Part shown: positions 4,536 through 52,063 of the stretch, in pieces
Layout: the number at the start of each line of letters is the position of its first letter
Position numbering within the stretch: position 1 is the first letter of the stretch
Source of the DNA: Setoptus koraiensis
Taxonomy: Eukaryota; Animalia; Arthropoda
Direction: 5' to 3'
Assembly (NCBI GenBank): GCA_048013815.1
Contig: CM106585.1
Location: 4,402,001 to 4,466,000, forward strand
Length of the DNA: 64,000 nucleotides
Program-made: the position numbers and the translations under genes
The notes under the pieces: model-generated
What the model saw: only the letters and a program-made list of their open reading frames with translations
Told to the model about the DNA's origin: nothing
Databases searched by the model: none

Positions 4536-5693
4536 ATGAGCATGGCCAGCAGATCGCCCGTGCCCTCAACCTCGGGCCAGGCCCCATCACTCAATTTGGG
4601 CAACATGAGCAGCAAGGACTTCAAGAGGCTCCTAGACACACAGTCACTCGTTGATGTAACGCTCGCTTGCGACGGCGGACAAATATCGGCCCACAAGGTT
4701 GTACTATCGGCCTGTAGTAGCTACATTAACAAAATACTCGAAAGTCATCCAGTCGAACATCCAATAATCATATTACCAGAACTAAATATTAGAGATATTA
4801 GAATACTAGTAAATTACATGTATACGGGAGAATTGTTAACTATGAACGCACCCTCGCACAGTCTGCTCAAGACGGCAGCAGTTTTAAATATCAACAGTCT
4901 CAATGATTTCTTCAACGAATCATCATCTTCACCAAGTCTTACCACTTCTACTACTTCAACTACTGCTGCATCACTGCAACCCACAATAAACAACAAATCA
5001 CCAGCGACCAACAACAACAACAACAGCAACAACTATAACAACAACAACAACAACTACAACAATTTGAAAAATAGCAACAATCACACTAAACAAACTCGCA
5101 AATACAATTTCAAAAATAAACAAAATGGCATCAATAGCAACACAATCTTAGCCGCTAATCGCGATGATGCGCCAAACAGCGACATTGTTGCTGATAACAA
5201 CATCAACGTCAAATACCTCAACATCAACAATCTACAGGAATTTCTCGGTTCCAATTACACTAATCATTTGGACGACGACGATGACGACGATGATGTTGAT
5301 GACGATCTAGACGACGACGATCTGGACGATGATCGAGACGCCCTAATGGACGAAAGTTCTGATCTCCATTTAGATGATGAAATGATGATGCTGCCCCAAC
5401 ATGACACTACAATTAATAGCCAATTTGATGGCGCAACCAATGGCGCCAAAAATCAAAAGGCCTCCTCACTAAATTCTTCTAAAAATAGATTGCATCTGGA
5501 CATGCAATTCAGATGCCCCGTTTGCGAGCAAGACTTTTACACTATTTGCAGTTTTGAATACCATATGCAAAGGAATCATTTTGTTAGCTCGTTTGGTTGC
5601 GAAATTTGCGATAAACCCTTTGCAAGCCTGCGATATGTCCTAACCGATCACATGAGGCGCTGCCACGGCTGGCTGGCTGAACAAGAAGTTTGA
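4536..5693 (+). CDS. BTB/POZ (tramtrack-type) domain + two C-terminal C2H2 zinc fingers, 385 aa, apparently single exon
   Basis: LVDVTLACDGGQISAHKVVLSACSSY...HPIIIL...LVNYMYTGE matches the ttk/broad/bab BTB core. CPVC-x12-H-x4-H and CEIC-x13-H-x4-H fingers at the C-terminus. Poly-N and poly-D linker. Orthologue not assignable by eye. Confidence 0.9.
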   Translation: MSMASRSPVPSTSGQAPSLNLGNMSSKDFKRLLDTQSLVDVTLACDGGQISAHKVVLSACSSYINKILESHPVEHPIIILPELNIRDIRILVNYMYTGELLTMNAPSHSLLKTAAVLNINSLNDFFNESSSSPSLTTSTTSTTAASLQPTINNKSPATNNNNNSNNYNNNNNNYNNLKNSNNHTKQTRKYNFKNKQNGINSNTILAANRDDAPNSDIVADNNINVKYLNINNLQEFLGSNYTNHLDDDDDDDDVDDDLDDDDLDDDRDALMDESSDLHLDDEMMMLPQHDTTINSQFDGATNGAKNQKASSLNSSKNRLHLDMQFRCPVCEQDFYTICSFEYHMQRNHFVSSFGCEICDKPFASLRYVLTDHMRRCHGWLAEQEV

Positions 5694-5829
5694 AAATGTT
5701 TGAATTGATTAATCATCGTTTTGAACCCCAACCCTAAGATACTATTACTATTATTGCAACTATTATTATTATTATCATTATTATTATTAATTATTATTAT
5801 TATCAACAATACTAATTCTCCTGAAAAAA

Positions 5830-6939
5830 TCAATTGCTCCTTGTCTTTAAATCTGGATCACGTTTGTGTCGAGGCTTGATATACCACGTCTGATATCTGT
5901 TGACACGGCATTTCTCTCTGATTTCTTCGTACACTTCTGGCCAAGATACCTTCTTAGACTCTAGTTGGGCTCTTTCAATTGCCTTTCTTGCGTACTCTTT
6001 TGGATCGAACTCTTCTGCGTCACGAATCATACTCAATAGCTCAGTCCTAAATGTTTTCTCTTTGATGATCTCACGTTTAAATCTTCTCTTTGCAATGAGT
6101 GTCTTGAATTTTTTCCTGAATTTCTTTAATTTGTGCTTCTTCATCTTTTGTCTCCTTATAATCTTCAGATGAAGGCGCAGATGATTGGTTCTGAACTTGT
6201 GTCTGAAGTCCAGATATTTTTTTATGGAACCTTCAGCATGAAAACCACGTGTTACAGTAAGATTGATATTATTTGTTTTGGATGTCATCAGATTTGTAAC
6301 ATGCATATTGTTAGGCGTAGAAGTTGAAGCGCCGATGTGCCAATGACGCTTGATATTGTTTGTTCTGTTCAAGGCTTTTTTAGGTAAAGGTTTAGAGAGG
6401 TCAGTTTCGTAACAACGTCGACTTGATGTGCCTATTGCATCGAGGATAGTCATCATCTCAGTAACAGACAGTTCATACATATTGTTGAAATTGAATTGTT
6501 GTAACTTGACTGGATCGTTCCAAACCTTTGGCCATAGCTGGTGAACCATTTTGTATTGATCATATAACAATGCGTATTCCTTGCGATTATCAAGACATTC
6601 TGGATAAACGAGAGAGTCGGCATATAATTTGCCAACAAACATATCTTTGGGCAACGATCCCGATGTGTTCATCTTTTTCATCTTATCCGTTATGTCGAGA
6701 GAAAGCAATGGCTTTCCTGCGACAATGTCCGGCCTCTCAAATCCTGATATTCCCTTTTCCTGCTCCTTGATGTCATACTTGTGGTCATCGTTACTGATAT
6801 CCTGCAATTCCTTATTTTCCTCGGTGCCTTGTTTTTGATTCAAATGGGCAATACTCCTGATTGTTCTCTTGTGTTGGCTAAATAGACCGTGTCTCACGGC
6901 CGAGCCAAGACATAGGTGGTGTCCCAGACGGGTGAACAT
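5830..6939 (-). CDS. Mitochondrial protein, 369 aa: presequence + ACAD9/VLCAD-like N-terminal fragment + mitoribosomal small-subunit mS38 (AURKAIP1/COX24-like) domain
   Basis: aa 256-325 LKIIRRQKMKKHKLKKFRKK...REIIKEKTFRTELLSMIRDAEEF matches the arthropod mS38 motif (IRRRKMKKHKLKK..R..RKEK.F...L...I.DAE.F). aa 94-170 SLPKDMFVGKLYADSLVYPECL resembles the ACAD9/VLCAD start ([45 protein letters not shown]). aa 1-39 are Arg-rich with no acidic residue. The ORF is uninterrupted. Confidence 0.8.
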   Translation of the reverse strand: MFTRLGHHLCLGSAVRHGLFSQHKRTIRSIAHLNQKQGTEENKELQDISNDDHKYDIKEQEKGISGFERPDIVAGKPLLSLDITDKMKKMNTSGSLPKDMFVGKLYADSLVYPECLDNRKEYALLYDQYKMVHQLWPKVWNDPVKLQQFNFNNMYELSVTEMMTILDAIGTSSRRCYETDLSKPLPKKALNRTNNIKRHWHIGASTSTPNNMHVTNLMTSKTNNINLTVTRGFHAEGSIKKYLDFRHKFRTNHLRLHLKIIRRQKMKKHKLKKFRKKFKTLIAKRRFKREIIKEKTFRTELLSMIRDAEEFDPKEYARKAIERAQLESKKVSWPEVYEEIREKCRVNRYQTWYIKPRHKRDPDLKTRSN

Positions 6940-7621
6940 TTTGAAATAGGATAAATTATGATAAAACTGAGGAATCCATAGGTTAGAATGGGGCTCGATG
7001 GAACAATGATCCCATGAACATGTGACCCGAGAGATCTCGTTTGCACCATGTGTGTTGTGCTTGTTATGCTTGCCTGCGCACGCCCACTCATTCCGCCGTT
7101 ACCCGCCAAATGCCACACCCATTCAGTGAGTATTCCAGAATTTGAATTTGAAATCTAAAACAGGTAGCAATAATGACACAAAAGGGTTGTCGTTTCAGTC
7201 GGAATTCAAGGATGTAGTGAAGAAAAAGAAAGGTGTCGACAGAGTGAGACAAGCAAACAAATATCTCAATAAAACGAGTTGTCTGTCAATCGGCAGCGGA
7301 CCCGTCATGCAACAAGAGGCATGGCGCCACCTTCGTCGAAATGGTTCGTTGTGTTCACTGACAAAGTGAGAAAAAGTTGACAATATTGAAGGTGAATAAT
7401 ATTGAAGAACGATTCAAAAGCGGAAACCATATATAGATAAATCAGAGAATGCCTCAACCAGGCAGTCTTAGACGGAACTAGAAACTGAATATTTGCACTG
7501 AATACCGTGTAAAAAGCATAATCGAAATAAAATCTTCGGAAGTGATTGCAGTGCTTCCGGCCATTCAGCACCATTTATCTGAGCCCTTTACTCATGAGCC
7601 TTTCACAAACTAATTTTTCAA

Positions 7622-7627
7622 TTTATT
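7622..7627 (-). terminator. Putative polyadenylation signal (AATAAA) of the SIFaR gene
   Basis: TTTATT on + strand, about 40 nt downstream of the SIFaR TAA stop (7666-7668), in AT-rich context. Confidence 0.5.
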
Positions 7628-7665
7628 CAATTAATTAATAATAATCATTATTTATACAGTTGTTG

Positions 7666-10345
7666 TTATTGTAATATCTGACTTGTGGTAATAGGCTGAA
7701 GTTTTGTATTAGATAATATTTGTTCATGATAGGCGATTATTGACTGGTTTTGGTTTGCAATAATGGAAGAGGAGCCATTTGAGTTATGATTAGAGCACGA
7801 TGACGATGACGAAGAATTTGATACGGACTGTGATTGGTGTCCCGAACGATCGGATAAACTGTCTATTTGTTGTGCTCTGCTATTGTTGAATTGTCTAGTC
7901 AACGTTTCACTAGTTTGTCTATTTGAAAGTTGCTCACTCCTTAGATCACTTCCAATTGCTGATTGTTTTAATCTATTGTTTGCATCACATTCATTGTTAT
8001 GACTAGTATTATTATCATTATCTACTATGATATTGACATTGTCTCCATAGTCAATGCCATTAACAAAGTGACCATGATTATTCGGTTGTCTCATTGTTCT
8101 ATTAGTTATTATTTGATAATTGTTCGACGACATTAGGCTATCGTCATCGTCATCACTTAATTTATGATTATTATATTGACTGTTACCAGTATTGTGTTTG
8201 GAAATATTTACACTATGAGAGTATTTTGGCTGCTGCTTCAGTTGTTGTTTGATGATTGTTTTTATATTTGATTCGCTTTGATTGAAATCGCTCTGTGATA
8301 TTTTGATTAATGAACAATTATTGCTAATATTATTACTGTTGTTGTAATTGCGATTATTATTAAAATCGTATTCATAATCACAATCATTATTACTATTGTT
8401 GTTGTCACTGCTGTTGTCCGACATGAGACGATGATTACTATTAGATGCTTGATATTGACGATTTTGCTCATTGGCTGCAGTAGTGTATGATTCTTGTGAT
8501 GATTGCCGGGGCGAAATGGATCGTACTGTCAATATTTCACCTGATGAACTGAAGCTATCCTCGTTACTACCGGTATATTTACATCCACTGCAATCATGTT
8601 TGTTGTTGTTCCTCGATTGCTTTCGCTCCGCTGCTGCTGACGTTTTAATAATATTATTCAAGTTATCCTGTCTCTTACAATCTCCATCTAGAATCATCGA
8701 GTGGTTTATGTGCTCGTCCGAAGGTGTCTCCACTGACGAATGAATACCCGATGATGAGCCCTGATTTGTTTTGAGCGATATACTAGTGGCAACCGAGGAA
8801 CTGTCCGAGGGCTGCCTGCCAATTGCTATATTATGATGACGAGATTGCTCCGGTGACTCAGTCTCATATATAGCGGTTATGTTATTAACAGGTTCTGAAT
8901 TATTTGTTGCACTTAATACCTTGCTGGTATGCCTCATCGACGACAGGTCGTCGACAAAATTGTTCACTGTTGCGGTGTTTGCTAGCGAATTGCATCTAGC
9001 TCTCGATTTGTTGGCCTCCTTTATTCTTTTGCCATCAACCTTCCAATGATCATCTTGTTGTTGCTGTTGTTGTTGTTGTTGTGTATAATTTAGAACACTT
9101 TCGTCAAAAACAATTGCATCACCATTGCTAGTGTTTATCACTGTCGCATCATCATATTCTGTTATTAACGGTACCCATGTCTTTCTCCTCTGCGTATGTC
9201 CCGATGAAAGATCCATTTTATCGCATTTCAATCCTTTCATTTTATAGTCTGTCATGGGTATATCGACTATTCCGTTCATCGGATTGCTGTTGTTGTTGCT
9301 AGCGTTGTTGTGGCTACCTCTTATGACATATCTGAATGTTTTGTCATCATTACAATCAGTATTCCTCCTACACCGTTCAATTCCTGACCCAGATGGCCTA
9401 TTGGCCTCATTGTTTGACCGCAATGATTGTGTAATGAGTGCATGGTGACCAGTGTTTCCAAACTGTTGTTGCTCGATAATTGTATCATTATACCGATGAC
9501 CGCTCGACGATTCGCAGTCGTAGACATGGATATCCGAGTTATTACTCATTGTCTCTTTGTCTAAGTCTCTGAGATTGTCTGACTTGTTATTATTTTCATC
9601 TGACGCAAATACAATTGTACCAGATGGCGCGTTCATCAAGGAATGTATCTCACAAATTGATGGTGAGTTGCTCTTGCTACCATTTGATGTTGTTGTTGTT
9701 TTCATCAAAATTGTGGTTGTTGTTGATGGTGCATTCTCAACAGTAATTGGTATTGTTTGATGATTAAGATTAATTTTATCAGAATTATACAAATTGGTAT
9801 TTTTGGTCATTTGATGATTCATTCCGTGCAATATAGTGAAATTGTCACTTAGATTGTGATGGTTATGTTTTGTTTTTTGATAATAATTGTAACTGTCCCG
9901 ACCCGAGCCATTATGGTGTATTACTCCATTTATACCCACTACAATGGAATGATTTGTTTGATTGGTATATTTTGAGCTCAGTGGGAATTGTAGACAACAG
10001 GATCTAACTGGGCTGTCATCATTATGTAAATCAAATCTTTGTTTGGTGTCACCATTTGATATCTTGTGCCGTTGCAGGGACTGAGCGTTGTGATTGTTTG
10101 AATAGTTATTGTGAGTATGATCGTGATTGTGGCCATTCCCTGCACCATTTGGGTGCTCTTGTGTCAGTCCGTCAAGTCCGTTCTCTGTACCATAGTTTTT
10201 ACTTAATGTCGTTGTGTTAGTCCGATTTGAGCGCGATCTGCCCCAACATTTGCTTGCCTTTAGCATCTCTGCAAAGCCCTTACGATACTTCCTATTGAAG
10301 AATGTGTACAATATTGGATTGATGCAACTATTCGAAGCGCCCAGC
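7666..10345 (-). CDS. SIFaR: SIFamide receptor exon 4 (TM7, helix 8, ~860-aa C-terminal tail, stop)
   Basis: Acceptor ttgctttttctctatctcgcttAG. Phase-2 join TG|G gives [26 protein letters not shown], matching SIFaR/NPFF-receptor TM7 ([16 protein letters not shown]). Open to TAA at 7666-7668. Confidence 0.93.
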
Positions 10346-13300
10346 CTAAGCGAGATAGAGAAAAAGCAAGATGTTGATAGGAACAGGGAGCAGATAAACA
10401 AGAAAACATTGATTAATAATTGGTAGAAAGTTTGTGTGCAATTAATTCATTTCGACCTTTGCGCCATCAGGCTGCATGGGGTAGATTTGTGTTTGAATAA
10501 ACAAGTTTTTCCAATAAACTTGCCGGCCTGCAAACGTGCCGGCAAGCCGAGCATGTCCCAGCACTCAGGTGAGCCAGAAAGAAACAAACAAACAATCAGA
10601 CAATCAAGCAAGCAAACAAACGAACAAACAAACTAACTCCTCTCCAGAGTGTTTATCTGAATTCTGTTTGATGATGAAAAAGCGCTTAGGTTTTTGCGAG
10701 ACACACTTTATATCTGGTGCACTTGTGCACTTGATCTTGACAAACGATAAAAGCGCCCCTCGGGGAGGGGCCAAAAGAACACGATTAGACAAACAGTCCA
10801 ATAAGCTAATCTTTGCTTATACAACAGCAACTAGCTCACTTTGTCCCTCCGCCAACCACTCCCCGGCGCCGAGCACTAATAAAGCACTTGTGATAACTTG
10901 GTATCTTTTGCCCGAGAAACACGCTGTCTTGTGTGTTTGCGGGACGTGTCTCGGGCCGGCATGTTGCGCATCTGATACTCGCAGATAATAAAATCCCGAG
11001 CCCCATCGCCAGAGTAGCCAAGAGGCTGCCAATGGAAATTAAGTTGCCGTCCCGAGCCATGCTCATACTAAATAATACTATATTATATAATCCATCTTGT
11101 GTTGCATTATTCCATATAATATTATGGTGTCACTGCGAGACGTTGTGCCCGCTGGCTAGATCGTTGATCAAGTTGGTCGCGATAAGTGGGCGACTTTTGC
11201 ACGAGCTGCCTCAGTGGACTCGTGCTTTCATTTGCATCGGGGGATATGCGCGCTCATTATGTCATTTTGTTACTGCCACCTGAGGTTGTAAGAGCGCGCT
11301 AAAAAACAGCCGCTCCAACTACTCAACTACAGCATAGATTCCATAGCATTTGCTTGGACGAACCACGACAACGATCTCATAACTCCGCGCCACTCTCAAT
11401 GAGATTCTCGTCATGCCGCTAATTAGCGACCGATCGGCATGCTCAATTAACCAACTAATCAGTCAAACTAGTTTCTCTCAGTCTATTGTGGCATGCCGGT
11501 CGACTGGCGGTGAACCAGTCACCCAATAGCACATGGCGCCACTCGAAGTGCTTCGGGACCGCCATTGTTATTATTGCATGGCCATCATTATGAGCCCGTG
11601 CTTGTTTGGGCCCCAAATTTGGGCCCCAAACTGATTGCAGCCAGGTGCAGTTGGAGCGATAACAAAAACTGCTTGCTATTTTTGCTCAATCCATCTCGGA
11701 CGCACCCTCTACTAGAGAGTATCTAGTCTCTCCATAGCTGCAAGGAGTAGAGCTCGCTCTGGCTTTCTGAGCTGCCCCCGTAAGGGCCCCGTGGCTCGAA
11801 ATCGGCAGTTTACACCGGGCCACTGACAACATTGTGAGAGCACCCCAACTCGGATAGAATTTTCAAAGTTTCTCAAAGTTTGCCGAGTTCGCGAGCCCAG
11901 CTCGCTAAGGTATGGCGATTTGCTGGACCAGTTTGTGGGGCCCCAAACGCGGGTTATTTTGTGGGCCCCAAACGTGGGCCAATGATAAAAGGGCGACGAG
12001 CGAAACACTTATGATGAGCAACCCACCAAAACCAGCAATCAGAGGTCGGTACCTGGGGCCAATTTTAAGCCGTGACTGCAGCGATTCTCAGAGAGAGAGA
12101 GAGAGAGCTCTGTTGGTCGTGCGAGTTTGTTGGGCCGCAGACAAACAAACATTGACTTTTCCATTGAAGTCAGGGGTGTTCCGAAAGATCTATATCGGGC
12201 CTATCTTTATGGCAACTTTGTCAATAGGCAAGCTCGGCCCGACTAGCTAATGAGCCAGCCAGTCGCCACTGTGTGACATGCTCATTAACTGGATCTGGCT
12301 AACGGATATTCATTATGGATCATTAGATACCGGGGAGTGTTGCGTTTGTTTGCAATGGTTACACCATTCAACTGATATCATCAAGTGGAGTGCGGATGAT
12401 TAGGGCCCGCAACAAAAGTCATGTTGTTTCCTCTTAGACGGCTCCACTTTGAGACGATCGCCGTAATTGAATTGGCCACCGCTGATACACACCTATGAGT
12501 CATAGGCTATGACCCGCATAGGCGGCTCGCGAGGGTCCGCTCAGGGGGCCCCGAAAGGCTCTCAGGCCAAAAATCGGCTCAGCCGTAAGCGCTGGTCTCG
12601 CCGGCCGAGATTATCTGGTGTGTATGAGAGGTATTTTTTCCGTGCATTAGCTTGCCGTCGCGATGGGCCCCCAAGAGCTGGCCGGCAAATTAGCCGATGG
12701 TCTTCGGTATTGGGTTGTACTGGCTATTTTTGCAAATGTCGTTCGTTGCTCTCAATGACAATAATGCTCAATGTCAAAGTACAAAGTCCGCTGTCCGTCT
12801 TAAAAGCCCGCCCCCCTCTAATCCGCACTCCGGCGGGCCCAGCTCGCCCTGAGTGACTTGTCGGGCGGCCCAGCAGGGCAGCACTGATTTAGAGAGAATT
12901 AGAGAGGAGAAAAAATCTATCTAATGATGATGAGTTATAGCGGTTTGCGCTGCGAGAGTGGCGGCACGGTGTCTCGAAATCGCCAAGCAGCGCGTTGTCA
13001 ATGAACTCTCGGTGTCGGTCGGCTTCGAAGCCGTCCAGTCGGGCCGGCTTCGAAACGGCGCACTCTTTGTCGGTTGGCAAGTTAATTCCGACAAAATACG
13101 ACCACTATCTATCGGTAACAAAGCGCGTTTCGTTGGTTGCGGGGCATAGATGGATAGATACTATCTATTGGATAGGCGCACCAGAGATAGCTGCACCGAT
13201 TACAGTTGCCGGCGCGCCAGTGTAATTATCGCCAGACACCTCGCCCGGAGCATTAGGGATGTTGTGAGCGTTTTATTATGCACAAACAGCGCGGCTCCTG

Positions 13301-13480
13301 GGGGCTCCAGGGTCAACAGACTGGCGCCCGTGTCCAAGTGGGCCCCTCCGAACCATTGGTGCTTCGCAATGCTATCGCAAGCCTCGATAATCGAGGGCCG
13401 CGAGGCGACAATATAGAAACTATAGTGAGCGAGCGATAATATGGATGCGATAATATAGAAAGATAGCAGCGTGTACTTAC

Positions 13481-13999
13481 CATTGGGCGAGCGGCAACAA
13501 GGTCAAAATGATGCTCTCCTCCAGGGAATTCTGTTCTATTTGGGGGCCCAATTTAACTCTGGCAAATATGGCGTATAGGGGCGCCCATGAGAGCACAAAT
13601 ATGACCACCACCACGAGCATCATTTTGACCACTTTTAATTTGGACTTTTGCATTATCAATTCAATTTTTAGACCTTTGGGCCTGTCGCCGGGTATGTTGC
13701 GGCGCCATATTTTGTACCATATACCAATATAACAAATGGTGATCACTAATAATGGAAACAGGTAACACAATATTAAATTGGCACAAATAAAATATATTGT
13801 GTCCATCTGTTGGTCTGGCCAGCGTTCCTCGCACAACAATATTGGCTCGGGCCAATGCTCCGATTGATACGGCTCCAAGGTGAAAAACATGGCCCACGGC
13901 ATGGCGATAGTGGACGAGAATAGCCAAATAATGAATATCGTCCATCTTGCGCCCCTCCTCGACATGTGCCAATCCAGGGGAAAGCAAATAGCCAAAAAT
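13481..13999 (-). CDS. SIFaR: SIFamide receptor exon 3 (ICL2 to start of TM7)
   Basis: ccAG|A completes the DRF motif (DRFLAICFP). Encodes TM4, CEERWP, TM5, KVVKMMLVVVVIFVLSWAPLY (TM6). Donor TG|GTAAGT. 519 nt, phases 2/2. Confidence 0.95.
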
Positions 14000-16365
14000 C
14001 TGGCGATGCGAGATTGTTGATTGTTTGTTTGCGTATTAGTGGCCCCATAATGCCCATGATGCCCATTGAACAGGATGGCGCCCCATTCCACGAAGCGCGG
14101 GCGTCGTTGCCAATAGGTGCAAATTGGCAACAATTGTCGTCGTCGTCGTCGTCGTCGGCGTCGGCGTATTTGTTTGTTGGTTGATGTTTTGCACGAGTGT
14201 TTCGCAAATTGGCCATTCATTATGATTCAATATTGATGTTGTTCGCAAATATTTGCCAACAGCACAACAATAACAACAATATTACGAGCCGTGCCAGCGC
14301 GTCAAATGGGCCAATGGGGAAATGAGACATGAGAAATTAAGACATGAGTATATTAGTTGATATTTGTTGTTATCATTCGAGTCGATCGTTGGGCGTTCGC
14401 TTCCGCGCTCGCCCAGCCAGCTCGCCAAGGAAGCTCGCCCAGCCAGCTCGCGTCTTCAGGCGCCTCTCTCGTCCCTAAATATAGCAACACAAAATTTGGC
14501 TGGCCCATGAATAAAAGTCGCAAATATCGCATATATTTAGCTGTGTTCAGTTGGGGCCCGGCCGAGGCCCGGGTAACTCGATATCGGCTTGCACGCAGGC
14601 GGCCTCGCGGGCTCTTGCAGGCGGTTTTGCGGGCTCTTGCAGGGGCCCACGTGAGGCGTTTTATGCGAGTCGCCGTTGGAAATTGTTTGTAATAAAATCC
14701 GCCGGCGCATGTAGCGCCCCATGTCAGCCAAAATCAAAGCCCAGCTACTACATGAGACTACAACTGTGGATGACCATTAGGCCGGCCACTTGACAAACAC
14801 AAGGCCCGATATTGAGTGAGCGGGGGTCATCATTAATGACCGTTGTAAACAGTGTTTAAAATAAAAGTTGTTGCTGTTCCACTTTGTTTGTTGCTTTTAG
14901 CCACTCTGATTTTCGCTGGCTGCCACTGGCAAGCCAGCGAACACAGGATCATTTGCATAATAGTTCGTTGAACCAGCCGATGGTAGCCAGATAGTGAGAG
15001 ACACTCTGAGAGTGAGAGAGACCTCACAAACAGCGTGACAGAGCCTCACAGGGGCCCCAATCGAGCAGAGGTCAATCCACCTAAACGCATAGACTAACTA
15101 ATCTAATAATACAACTCACTCGTGGTTTGCCTTTGCCGCCGCTGATGAACTCCCATTGGTCTGGCCAACTGTCTTTGCATCTTTGCGTATCTGGCCTGCT
15201 GTACGATAAACTGTTGTTCGCGTACATGTCCCGCTGCTCGCCTTGTGGGGCCAGAGCCTTGCGGGGCCCTTTGTGTGCACGGGGGCCCCACAAGCAGATA
15301 TAGCGTGCCTAGGCGTCATAGTTGATTGTTCGGCGCCTCTCTGGGCCGTGCATGTCATTTAGCATTCGGGTGAGCTTGTGTTTGTTAATAGTTGTTGCCA
15401 GTTGCCGCCGAATCCAAATGATCCGAATCTCTTTATCTCTCTCATGCATGCTTTCCATGATTGATGGTGTCCCCGGCACACACGCACACACACACACATA
15501 CTAGCACAAGTGCCGGCTCTTCGATGCTGATGTAATTAACACTTAAACGGGGGGCCCGACGGCGCAGCGGAAGGTCAACTAACCGAGCGGGCTACCGAGC
15601 GACGGGGCCCGCCGGCGGCCGGCCCGACAGCCCAGCAGCATAACAGCCCAGCAGCATAACAGTGAGGCGGCCCGAGCAATAACCAATTACATGACAACAA
15701 TGAACTTGATGGCTGGCAGACGGCGCAAGAAGCCAACGGCTTATTGTCGCAACGGCTTATTGTCGAGCCAGCAACTAACTATAGCTAAAATAATAAAACG
15801 CCGGCCCCATTTTTGTTGTGCGCGGCGCTGCGTGGCGTGGCGTTTTTAGCTGCGGTTGCGCGTCTGACATTTGATAATTGCCCCGGGCTAATGCTCGACA
15901 CTTTGGCCACATTCGAGTTCAATTGCCGCCACTCATGCCCACCAGTTGGCATGGCAACTGGCCGGGCCGGTTGTAACGGTTTGTTTGCCGGCCCGGCCCG
16001 GCCGATTGTCGCTGCTCGGTGGCTCCCAATTGTTCTCTGAATATTATTGTCTGAATTGTCTGACTTGTCTGACTTATTATTGTCGCCAATGTTGGCTGCC
16101 GTGCCATGGATAGTTACAGCGAGTCATGCGATGTTTAAAATTAATATCATCAGTCGGCCACCTACTAATGATAATAATGATAATCTAATAGTCGGCCACC
16201 GTTAACCGCCCGCTCTTGCCATTTCGGCTTAGCCAATTTGCAAATTTGCATATTCAATGCGATCATCATCTTGACATCATCTGTGTGTGAGCGGGGGGGG
16301 CCTCATTACCAAACTACGCTACCTATCTCTGTCATGTGCGACCGGCCTGACATTTGCTCGCCTGG

Positions 16366-40793: not shown

Positions 40794-41052
40794 CACTAAA
40801 TTATTCGGGCCCCCAAAACTGGCAAAATCAGAGTGCCTGTAGCTGGTCTAATGGAAGCCATAAGAGTGGGGGCCAATTTGCGCGCGCGTTTTCATTCATG
40901 CAACAACTTGCCGCGAACGGGCCGCTACACATATTTGTTTTTGTATTTGTCGCCGAGTATTTTGATTATATTTGCGGGACGCTCGGTATGAATCGAGTGC
41001 GGATAATTGTGATAATTGCGCCATGTCGGCGTGTGTGTGTGTGTGTACTTAC

Positions 41053-41502
41053 GGACAAATAGGTTGCTGATGAGAGTTGCTGGCAAACAAAACAGTAAGA
41101 CGAGAATGTCGGCCAAAGCGAGATTGGCTATGAAATAGTTTGTCACTGTTCGCATTCGGGGCGATCTGTACACTATGGCCACGACAAATCCGTTACCTAT
41201 TATGCCGATAATGAACACAATTGTATAGGCGAGCGCCAACAAAGTGCTCACGCTCAGCGAATGTCTCAGCCAGGGGATATCGGTGTGCACAACGGAGGCC
41301 GCCGATGTGACAACTGAATTATCTTCGTTTTTGCGCTGCTGCTGTTGCTGTTGCGTAACCGCCGCCGCTTCCACAATGGCCGTTGACAGGTTGCTGTTGG
41401 TTGTTGGCTGCTGTTGCTGTTGCATTGTTGTCACTGCTGTCGTTGATTGAATTTCCGCCCTGTCGCTGCTAATTGACGCTAATGACACCGCCTCCAGTTG
41501 TG

Positions 41503-41536
<34 letters not shown>

Positions 41537-42007
41537 TTGTTGCTGCTGTTGTTGTTGATTGTCGAGCGATGCTGGCGTACCTGTGACGACCGCCATGCTG
41601 TCGCTAGAAATGGCCGATTGCGTGGCGACGATAGTGATTGATTGCAAGTTAGTAGTGCTACTGCTATTGTCTTGGCTGTCCAATGGCGGCTGCGAATTAA
41701 CTGCCAACAACAATGCAATTGGATTACTGTTGTTGCTATTGTTGCTGTTGATCACTAGTCCGCTTGACAGCAACACCAACACCAAGTGCCAATACAATGG
41801 GCCCCATCGCAAACATAATGAGCCTCGTGCCAACACTGTTCTTGTCACCTGTTTTTTCGAGTATGGCTTCACTGGGACACGCAAAAAACAGCGCACCGAT
41901 GATCTCATGGGCGAGCACACAATCCGCTGCAAGCTGGTGGCATTGTCGCTGGCGCTGGCCTTGTCGCTGGCGTGCCAACAACAAACCGATTTCTTTTGGG
42001 TAGCCAT
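41053..42007 (-). CDS. SIFaR: SIFamide receptor exon 1 (long N-terminus, TM1, TM2)
   Basis: [60 protein letters not shown] is class A peptide GPCR TM1-2 of SIFaR type. Donor C|GTAAGT. Four exons sum to 4,254 nt = 1,417 aa + stop. The exact start ATG is uncertain (M1 versus M34). Confidence 0.9.
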
Positions 42008-51151: not shown

Positions 51152-52063
51152 CTAATTACAGGTGTGCAGTTGTTTTTCTGTTTTGCAAATAAAACAGGTT
51201 GTATGGCAACAATAATGAAATTTACAATGACACATTTCGCTATGACTAATAACGCGCGTTTTGTAACCACGTCCGCAGCACAATTTGTCACAGGAATCGG
51301 GCGCGTTAGGATGAGCGTTTGGGTCGCATTCTCTCGCTTGGGTGCCCGCGATGCCGAGCCTGGCATCCGGCTGACAATAATCGGGCGACTTGTGCAAATG
51401 TATCAGGTCCTCTTTGTTGAGGTACTGGAAATTTTGTTGCTGGTAGTTGTAGTTGTTGTTGCTGTTGCTGTTGTGAGCGGCCGAGCTGGCGTGCGACCTC
51501 TTGCCGTAACTGGCGCTGCTCTTGCCGTTGTGATAATGGTGACTTCTCGCCGTGGGCCCCATAGAGGACACAATTTGCGTGGTGCAATTGTGCCCGTCGA
51601 TCAGTATGAGCGTGGTGTTTGAATTTATAATTAAATTATGTTCCGTGGTGGCGTTATTTGTAGCTGGCGGCAAATCGCCGCCACTTGCAACAACATTGGG
51701 CTCGTCGTTGACAAAATGGTTGTCCATGTGATTCAGTTTGTTGCTGTTGACGGCGGCCACCACCGTCTGATTGCTCGCTGCGCTCTGCTGTTGGTTGTTG
51801 CTGGCCACTTCCGGTTGCTGGTGCTGCTGTTGTTGTCGTTGGTGCTGGTGGCGCGTAAGAACGTTGATAATCTCGCCCTTGTCCATCATGGCTATGAGGC
51901 GATGCGCCTGTATGGACGGAATGTGAATAGAGGAGTCGTATTTGCGCTTCAGATAATCGCCCACCACGGAGAACGTGGGCAGCGTTCGCCAACAGGTTGT
52001 GAGGGCGCAAGAACCGGACACGCCGTGACAGCGGCACTTGAGCTCCATGTTGCGAGCCACAGC
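51152..52063 (-). CDS. Wnt16: Wnt ligand terminal exon, Wnt16-like
   Basis: AG|GCT GTG GCT gives AVARNMELKCRCHGVSGSCALTTCW (lipidation motif CHGxSGSC intact). KYDSSIHI resembles Wnt16 KYENSIQI; KSPDYCQPDARLGIAGTQAREC resembles Wnt16 [22 protein letters not shown]. Full C-terminal Cys pattern CCGRGY...CHCKFHYCC..C..C......C. Wnt family certain, subfamily probable. Confidence 0.85.
   Translation of the reverse strand, partial: AVARNMELKCRCHGVSGSCALTTCWRTLPTFSVVGDYLKRKYDSSIHIPSIQAHRLIAMMDKGEIINVLTRHQHQRQQQQHQQPEVASNNQQQSAASNQTVVAAVNSNKLNHMDNHFVNDEPNVVASGGDLPPATNNATTEHNLIINSNTTLILIDGHNCTTQIVSSMGPTARSHHYHNGKSSASYGKRSHASSAAHNSNSNNNYNYQQQNFQYLNKEDLIHLHKSPDYCQPDARLGIAGTQARECDPNAHPNAPDSCDKLCCGRGYKTRVISHSEMCHCKFHYCCHTTCFICKTEKQLHTCN

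Follow-up and report, generated by a model that had tools for sequence, protein, structure and literature searches.

In the genome of the arthropod Setoptus koraiensis, a stretch of 64,000 nucleotides (assembly GCA_048013815.1, contig CM106585.1, positions 4,402,001 to 4,466,000; hereafter the window, to which all nucleotide coordinates refer unless a locus is named) contains an intronless open reading frame (ORF) of 369 amino acids (aa) on the minus strand (5830-6939), in which a 5' fragment of an Egm/ACAD9-like gene is joined to the gene for the mitoribosomal protein mS38. We propose, with a probability of about one half, that the product is a chimeric precursor that is imported into mitochondria via a borrowed presequence and whose front part is then removed at R231-G-F/H-A (here and below, a slash within a site marks the candidate cleavage position). 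Mature mS38 of ~17 kDa would thereby be released, while the front part would be a disposable pro-region and not a second functional protein. Beyond the existence of the ORF and its homology to both families, all steps of this proposal are inferred.

The ORF is uninterrupted over 1110 nt without any internal stop codon. As a whole, it yielded nothing significant in searches against Pfam and PDB, and no record of the exact chimeric product was found in the protein collections searched. The stretch was recovered at 95-98% of sampled words in non-RNA sequencing runs from three independent studies, and an assembly artefact as the source of the chimera was rejected on these grounds.

The Egm/ACAD9-like part and its presequence

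An exhaustive phmmer search with aa 40-230 returned 18 matches, the best of which was P0017, a protein of 706 aa (E 2.4e-30, with 43% identity between aa 51-189 and its residues 60-195). Full-length homologues of the N-part carry the ACAD9-ACADV_C and acyl-CoA dehydrogenase domains of Pfam, and those that have been named are mite proteins, i.e., from Tetranychus urticae, from Sarcoptes scabiei ('ACAD9') and from Dermatophagoides ('complex I assembly factor Egm-like'). Judging by these names, the source of the window is probably an acariform mite or closely related to one. The ACAD9-like nature that an initial annotation, made from the sequence alone, had assigned to the N-part was thus borne out by homology. 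The segment concerned (aa 40-185; 6385-6822, minus strand) is acid-rich, with 25 D/E, and covers approximately residues 60-195 of the ~700-aa Egm/ACAD9-like proteins, which is about a fifth of their length; the catalytic domains are absent, as are the middle, C-terminal and ACAD9-ACADV_C domains. The fragment stops within the N-terminal helical region, and the hydrophobic helix 'SIxxLIIxNxL' that is conserved in the relatives is missing. The Pfam ACAD domain gave no match on the ORF, and tblastn with full-length P0017 and P0020 revealed no other pieces of an Egm-like gene in the 64-kb window.

With regard to structure, AlphaFold predicted confident helices at aa ~119-178, and part of the N-part attained a predicted local distance difference test score (pLDDT) of 87-91. 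Fold searches with the model of the N-part stayed within noise (Foldseek best E 0.74, VIA-align best Z 5.0) and did not recover an acyl-CoA dehydrogenase N-domain, which is probably due to the truncated fragment in combination with a shallow alignment. A word search with aa 1-180 gave no match, and an ESM Atlas feature search with aa 40-180 gave no usable one. P0017 itself is encoded by a single intronless ORF (L005:2159-4279) that is flanked by opposite-strand genes. Its acyl-CoA dehydrogenase core matches Pfam weakly (E about 1e-5), and this weak match suggests a divergent, possibly non-catalytic ACAD9-like family.

The first 39 residues (6823-6939, minus strand) are free of acidic residues, the first of which is found at position 40. 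They contain 6 K/R and a candidate cleavage site, R28-S-I/A-H. A presequence score was derived as a crude in-family log-odds measure trained on the N-termini of relatives and ranked against control windows; by this score, windows in the range of aa 11-31 belong to the top 0.3%. Composition and score are both in line with the acid-free N-terminal presequence that had been postulated from the first inspection of the sequence. In tblastn, the first similarity to P0017 is found five codons ahead of M1 (LSYFKMFTRLGH vs. LSYIRNFLIRGH), and the motif LSYxxxFxxxGH is common to aa 1-39 and P0017. Because the similarity already starts upstream of M1, the presequence has apparently been inherited from the Egm-like gene, whose own N-terminus it would represent. 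For the same reason, the copy of the Egm-like gene seems to be devoid of the parent's original start codon. Upstream of M1, no stop codon interrupts the reading frame for at least 53 codons (6940-7098, minus strand), a region without any ATG.

The mS38 block, its junction and the upstream modules of relatives

Alignment of homologues delimited a conserved block comprising aa 231-369 and the stop codon (5830-6249, minus strand). The homologues were collected by a word-based search that yielded 16 proteins of 208-312 aa, all of which align only with aa ~229-369 of the window protein; the resulting alignment, A1, contains 17 sequences. Fifteen of the 16 are 45-61% identical to the window protein over this range (E down to 2.4e-46), while the sixteenth, P0016, is more weakly related (51% identity over 18% of the query, E 3.7e-10). 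Taken alone, the window protein matches Pfam COX24_C (PF08213) with E=2.7 and 8.4 bits, below the cutoff of 23, while nine of the 17 sequences in A1 match this family (best E 6.9e-5). In a profile search of the PDB, human mS38 chains (6nu2_A3, 9ojm_3 and 3j9m_A3) ranked at the top with E values of 1.6-3.2, which are not significant, and no match was obtained at E<=0.01. The COX24_C/DUF1713 core motif RRQKMKKH (aa 262-269; 6133-6156, minus strand) aligns with 'RRRKMNHHK' of human mS38, the modelled part of which starts at 'NVLKIRRRKM', equivalent to aa ~258 of the window protein. All 31 of the 31 invariant family positions are kept in the C-part, and structure prediction places a long helix at aa 251-309 (pLDDT 97-98). 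From homology, and not from a direct family match, we conclude that the C-part represents the presumptive mS38 (AURKAIP1/Cox24) of this lineage. The mS38 domain proposed earlier therefore stands by way of the relatives, while the protein's own match to the family falls short. Where the genomic context is known (L002, L003 and L005), the ORFs of the relatives are intronless as well. A metagenome scan for further mS38 loci found none.

The conserved block is opened by R231-G-F-H-A (6235-6249, minus strand), an instance of the family-conserved R-x-F-H-A that precedes RRQKMKKH by exactly 31 residues in 15 of the 16 relatives. When 16 sequences were anchored on the Arg of R-x-F, column conservation was 12-50% at positions -25 to -1, reached 100% for R, 100% for F, 93% for H and 87% for A, and was high thereafter. 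Across the family, the 40 residues upstream of the Arg contain 3.6% D/E and 20% S/T. In ordinary relatives, the part upstream of the site comprises 75-110 residues with a typical presequence start (MFRxLA...) and is acid-poor throughout. The mitochondrial processing peptidase (MPP) classically recognizes an R-2 motif, while R-3 motifs are found where an Icp55-type peptidase acts. As a candidate site, R231-G/F-H-A fits the R-2 motif of MPP; with subsequent loss of the Phe to an Icp55-type peptidase, it would fit R-3. This reading of R-G/F-H-A is based on PMC8734313 and on the known motifs. A motif of this kind is present at the junction and always opens the conserved block, which speaks for the presence of the motif and not for cleavage as such. 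What stood of the internal R-2/R-3 site in the initial annotation is thus a candidate located at a sharp conservation boundary, behind a segment that is acid-free and predicted to be disordered.

This segment, aa 181-235 (6235-6399, minus strand), is the longest acid-free run of the protein and consists of exactly 55 residues, among them 9 N, 8 T, 5 K, 4 S, 3 R and 4 H. It ends with ...NLTVTRGFHA, followed by E236, and is predicted to be disordered (pLDDT 37-55). Its extent, its lack of acidic residues and its end VTRGF/HA ahead of the mS38 block had all been described correctly in the initial annotation. In 20,000 composition-preserving shuffles, an acid-free run of at least 55 residues occurred with p=0.027, and such a run together with a second one of at least 39 residues with p=0.003. 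A third acid-free run, 45 residues in length (aa 245-289), corresponds to nothing more than the core of mS38 with its many K/R, so that the absence of acids alone is a weak signal in this protein. By the presequence score, aa 181-211 belong to the top 3-5% of control windows.

The origin of the linker was addressed by local alignment against shuffles. Similarity of aa 186-230 to the collinear part of P0017 is marginal (z=2.1, p about 0.05), similarity to the pre-regions of 15 close mS38 relatives is not significant (p 0.10-0.88), and a value of p=0.04 was obtained with P0016, a distant bee protein. The last ~15 residues of the linker resemble P0002 and P0005 ('LMTSKT...TVTR' vs. 'MLPHKTSKTITKR'). 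The linker may be Egm-derived or a remnant of the mS38 pre-region, neither of which is favored. A complete ancestral mS38 presequence was rejected for the linker, since Egm homology up to ~aa 185 leaves no more than ~45 residues compared with 75-110 in the relatives. At most, therefore, the linker would correspond to the C-terminal part of the ancestral mS38 pre-region and not to a full second presequence. Of the second, internal presequence claimed earlier, the acid-free composition and a moderately presequence-like character according to the crude score were retained, while its status as a full presequence was not. Within the proposed scheme, and with the same even standing as the scheme as a whole, the linker would be the family's normal 'pre-site' region, which here ends an unusually long chimeric pro-region.

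Among the relatives, the part upstream of R-x-F differs in length (75-230 aa), sequence and origin. In P0005 (299 aa; L001:67-966), the site is preceded by a fragment of succinate-semialdehyde dehydrogenase (Pfam Aldedh E 1.1e-5, above cutoff; PDB 4v6h E 3e-10). It appears to include the N-terminus of that enzyme, and the acidic residues of the parent enzyme are lost in its last ~70 residues. P0002 (L002:7264-7992), the orthologue of P0005 with the same downstream neighbor gene, is 81% identical to it over the range that begins 21 residues before the Arg and extends to the C-terminus, yet has an unrelated plain short N-terminus. Because of this pair, the replacement of the N-part in P0005 is considered to be recent and independent of that in the window chimera. 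A third module, which is acid-rich and situated between a start resembling a mitochondrial targeting signal and the R-x-F site, is shared by P0013 (L003:483-1421) and P0001 (L007:104-955), the true ORF of which comprises 283 aa, its gene call having begun 48 codons too late. The signature of this module, 'K(I/V)xLPDFDKMR...ERELxNxST', stands for a sequence that no match in Pfam, PDB or ESM Atlas served to identify. P0008 carries yet another N-module for which Pfam and PDB gave no identification. An orthologous Egm-mS38 fusion was not found in the protein collections searched.

Since relatives have another fragment, another module or nothing in the place of the Egm-like part, a replaceable pro-region fits better than a second functional product. 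More tentatively, and with somewhat less than even odds, we suggest that mS38 may repeatedly have swapped its own targeting region in this lineage for 5' fragments of genes for other mitochondrial proteins (Egm/ACAD9-like, succinate-semialdehyde dehydrogenase and the P0013/P0001 module), while at least the last ~20 acid-free residues and R-x-F/H-A would have been kept in each case for release by MPP.

Proposed processing and alternative explanations

According to the proposed scheme, the borrowed N-terminal presequence would drive import through TOM/TIM23 and would be removed by MPP. A second cut would occur at R231-G/F-H-A with R at -2, and an Icp55-type aminopeptidase would possibly trim F233. 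The basic mS38 thus released (~17 kDa, 136-137 residues, pI 10.5; for aa 234-369, 136 aa, 17.1 kDa and an isoelectric point of 10.5 were calculated) would join the small mitoribosomal subunit, while the Egm-derived piece of ~200 residues would have served as a disposable import/pro-region and would probably be degraded. For bovine/human AURKAIP1, a mature size of ~16 kDa has been reported vs. a calculated 22.4 kDa, and the authors proposed a signal peptide longer than predicted (PMC3726836); the ~17 kDa predicted here for mS38 matches this relation between precursor and mature protein. The targeting signal of human mS38 is needed at the very N-terminus, and even a short masking extension abolishes mitochondrial targeting (PMC12718117), so that any extension must bring its own signal. 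In addition, MPP cuts internal presequence-like sites given a strong N-terminal presequence (PMC8734313).

Several observations weigh against this scheme. The presequence score of aa 201-231 is ordinary (top 22-32% of control windows), and the last 30 residues before R231 contain a single basic residue besides R231 itself and are N/T-rich, not R/L/A/S-rich. The invariant R and F could be contacts to ribosomal RNA instead of a cleavage motif. In yeast, the N-part of mS38 is divergent and not resolved in structures yet functional (PMC6582356), so that removal of the upstream sequence is no necessity. In the Egm fragment, none of the nine positions that the alignment of Egm N-regions shows as family-conserved has changed; the fragment could be selected for its own function, or it could simply be young. 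Finally, four RNA runs recorded under a related organism provided 0 reads over window positions 5500-7900 (2401 letters), a result that does not constitute a test of expression.

Some of these points are shared by an explanation without internal cleavage. In this case, the whole protein of ~40 kDa would be present on the mitoribosome after removal of the presequence, and Egm helices and linker would be added to mS38 as a peripheral extension specific to the lineage. Gains of extensions are frequent among mitoribosomal proteins, the N-part of yeast mS38 is divergent and yet functional (PMC6582356), the stretch directly before R231 is weakly presequence-like, and the Egm fragment combines retained family-conserved residues with confidently predicted helices at aa 119-178. 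On the other hand, the upstream part has been exchanged wholesale between close relatives (P0002 vs. P0005) and is of differing origin among species, which makes a fixed structural role unlikely; conservation begins sharply at the Arg in its R-x-F context, and mature mammalian mS38 is far smaller than its precursor (PMC3726836). We regard this explanation as improbable on balance. The initial annotation had proposed a true tandem polyprotein, cleavage of which would yield mature mS38 plus a stable and functional ACAD9/Egm-like mini-protein. The features of the junction serve this idea just as well as the disposable pro-region, and it gains from the fact that every position which is invariant or nearly so in the alignment of Egm N-regions has been retained, from the part of the fragment that is predicted to be folded (pLDDT 87-91) and from the conservation of the P0013/P0001 module between two species, according to which N-modules are not always junk. 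However, the fragment is restricted to approximately residues 60-195 of ~700, ends inside the N-terminal helical region and lacks the helix 'SIxxLIIxNxL'. FAD-binding, catalytic and ACAD9-ACADV_C domains are absent from the ORF and from the rest of the window, fold searches with the N-part model stayed at noise level, other modules occupy this place in relatives and no orthologous fusion turned up in the protein collections. The mini-protein is considered very unlikely.

Translation could also start internally, at M212, M218 or M162, either on a shorter transcript or by internal initiation, which would leave the Egm-like part as an untranslated or separately translated relic. In-frame Met residues are indeed present at positions 131, 154, 162, 163, 212 and 218, a start at M162 would give a protein of 208 aa and thus inside the range of 208-244 aa seen in relatives, and an internal transcription start would be compatible with the 0 reads of the RNA runs. 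This is countered by the poor quality of the resulting targeting peptides, with three acidic residues among the first 20 after M162, and with a score in the top 32% only and one K plus one R after M212, while M1 is excellent in this respect and has A at -3 (CAAAATG). Furthermore, leaky scanning as far as M212 is unlikely in view of the ten AUGs that precede it, and the 211 codons upstream form an open frame at about 39% GC. An internal start consequently appears quite unlikely to us, if a little less so than the polyprotein. Hardly probable at all is a non-functional or unexpressed duplicate, i.e., a young pseudogene or retrocopy in an organism that has its canonical mS38 elsewhere. The chimeric ORF is intronless, lies between the 3' ends of two unrelated genes and is not part of the synteny of the mS38 loci L001-L003, and the 0 reads from the four RNA runs, which are no test of expression, would also be compatible with such a duplicate. 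Nevertheless, the ORF is intact over its 1110 nt, the C-part has retained each of the 31 invariant family positions, and the occurrence of the stretch in the sequencing runs of three studies argues against an assembly artefact. Among the explanations considered, we give preference to the chimeric precursor with a disposable, Egm-derived pro-region.

Genomic setting and comparison with known systems

The upstream neighbor of the chimeric gene is a same-strand gene for a rhodopsin-type G protein-coupled receptor (Pfam 7tm_1), exons of which were found at 7666-10401, 13477-14220 and 40925-42007 (minus strand), a span of more than 30 kb. Its last exon (7666-10401) encodes a low-complexity, N/S/Q-rich C-terminal tail of ~900 residues beyond the NPxxY motif. 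On the other side, a convergent gene for a BTB/POZ and C2H2 zinc-finger protein of 385 aa with long poly-N and poly-D tracts has its 3' end at 4536-5693 (plus strand). The stop codons of this gene and the chimeric gene are 136 bp apart, and the gap is largely an AT-rich simple repeat of the ATT/AAT type. Further away, an exon of the Wnt family is located at 51152-52060 (minus strand; Pfam wnt E 1e-48), and its nearest database protein is 79% identical.

To our knowledge, most documented cases of internal cleavage by MPP come from fungi and plants, and the capture of gene pieces as a way to swap import signals has so far been reported for plant genes that were transferred from the organelle. 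For animals, a paper from 2020 called internal MPP cleavage no more than a potential property (PMC8734313). No animal example of a borrowed-presequence precursor of this kind was found in the literature searched, which is no proof of absence. If the suggested repeated replacement with release by MPP is true, it would represent the first counterpart in animals of the SDH2-RPS14 type known from plants and would provide a natural series of internal MPP substrates. With one conserved site behind unrelated, interchangeable modules, such a family would allow the requirements of MPP far from the N-terminus to be tested on natural material. It would also be an example of how, in an animal, an essential mitochondrial protein can exchange its import signal through the capture of pieces of other genes. 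The finding furthermore bears on the start of mature mS38, which is not visible in structures. Should the site be uncleaved, an enzyme fragment would have given rise to a mitoribosomal extension specific to the lineage, a result of more modest interest.

Both constituents have well-studied counterparts. Residues ~34-190 of the window protein are homologous to the N-region of mite members of Egm/ACAD9, a complex I assembly factor of the acyl-CoA dehydrogenase family, yet comprise only about a fifth of it without any catalytic or C-terminal domains. With mammalian mS38/AURKAIP1 and yeast Cox24, the window protein shares the C-terminal K/R-rich COX24_C motif and the long helix as well as a divergent N-part that is not seen in structures (PMC6582356), and the mature bovine/human protein is ~6 kDa smaller than its precursor (PMC3726836). 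Unlike the human protein, the mite-type family possesses an additional conserved block of 27-31 residues, R-x-FHAxGSKxxYLDFRxRFxTxHLR, upstream of the modelled part, and unlike the mammalian and yeast proteins, the window protein has gained a foreign N-part of ~190 residues.

As regards the arrangement of the precursor, Arg5,6 and Atp25 from Saccharomyces cerevisiae and Rsm22-Cox11 from Schizosaccharomyces pombe resemble the proposed precursor in the logic of the junction, with a strong presequence at the N-terminus and an internal presequence-like segment that carries R-2/R-3 at the junction (PMC8734313, PMC5063612). In these cases, however, both halves are complete functional proteins, whereas the N-half in the window is a truncated fragment that is replaced by unrelated modules in relatives. 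The closest known system is SDH2-RPS14 of grasses, namely rice, maize and wheat, which is counted among MPP-type composite precursors in PMC8734313. According to the account given in PMC1543663, which cites Figueroa et al. (2000), a mitoribosomal protein is fused there to the first exon of a gene for a mitochondrial enzyme, which precedes it; the fusion is imported with the help of the borrowed presequence and is processed between the two parts to yield the mature ribosomal protein. As far as that account goes, the two systems agree in that a protein of the small mitoribosomal subunit follows the N-terminal part and the presequence of a mitochondrial enzyme. They differ in that the grass fusion arises by alternative splicing from a functional sdh2 gene after transfer out of the mitochondrion into the nucleus, while the window contains a single intronless ORF with a partial copy of an Egm/ACAD9-like gene. 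Moreover, mS38 is an old nuclear gene that already had a presequence of its own, and its processing in the chimera is predicted only.

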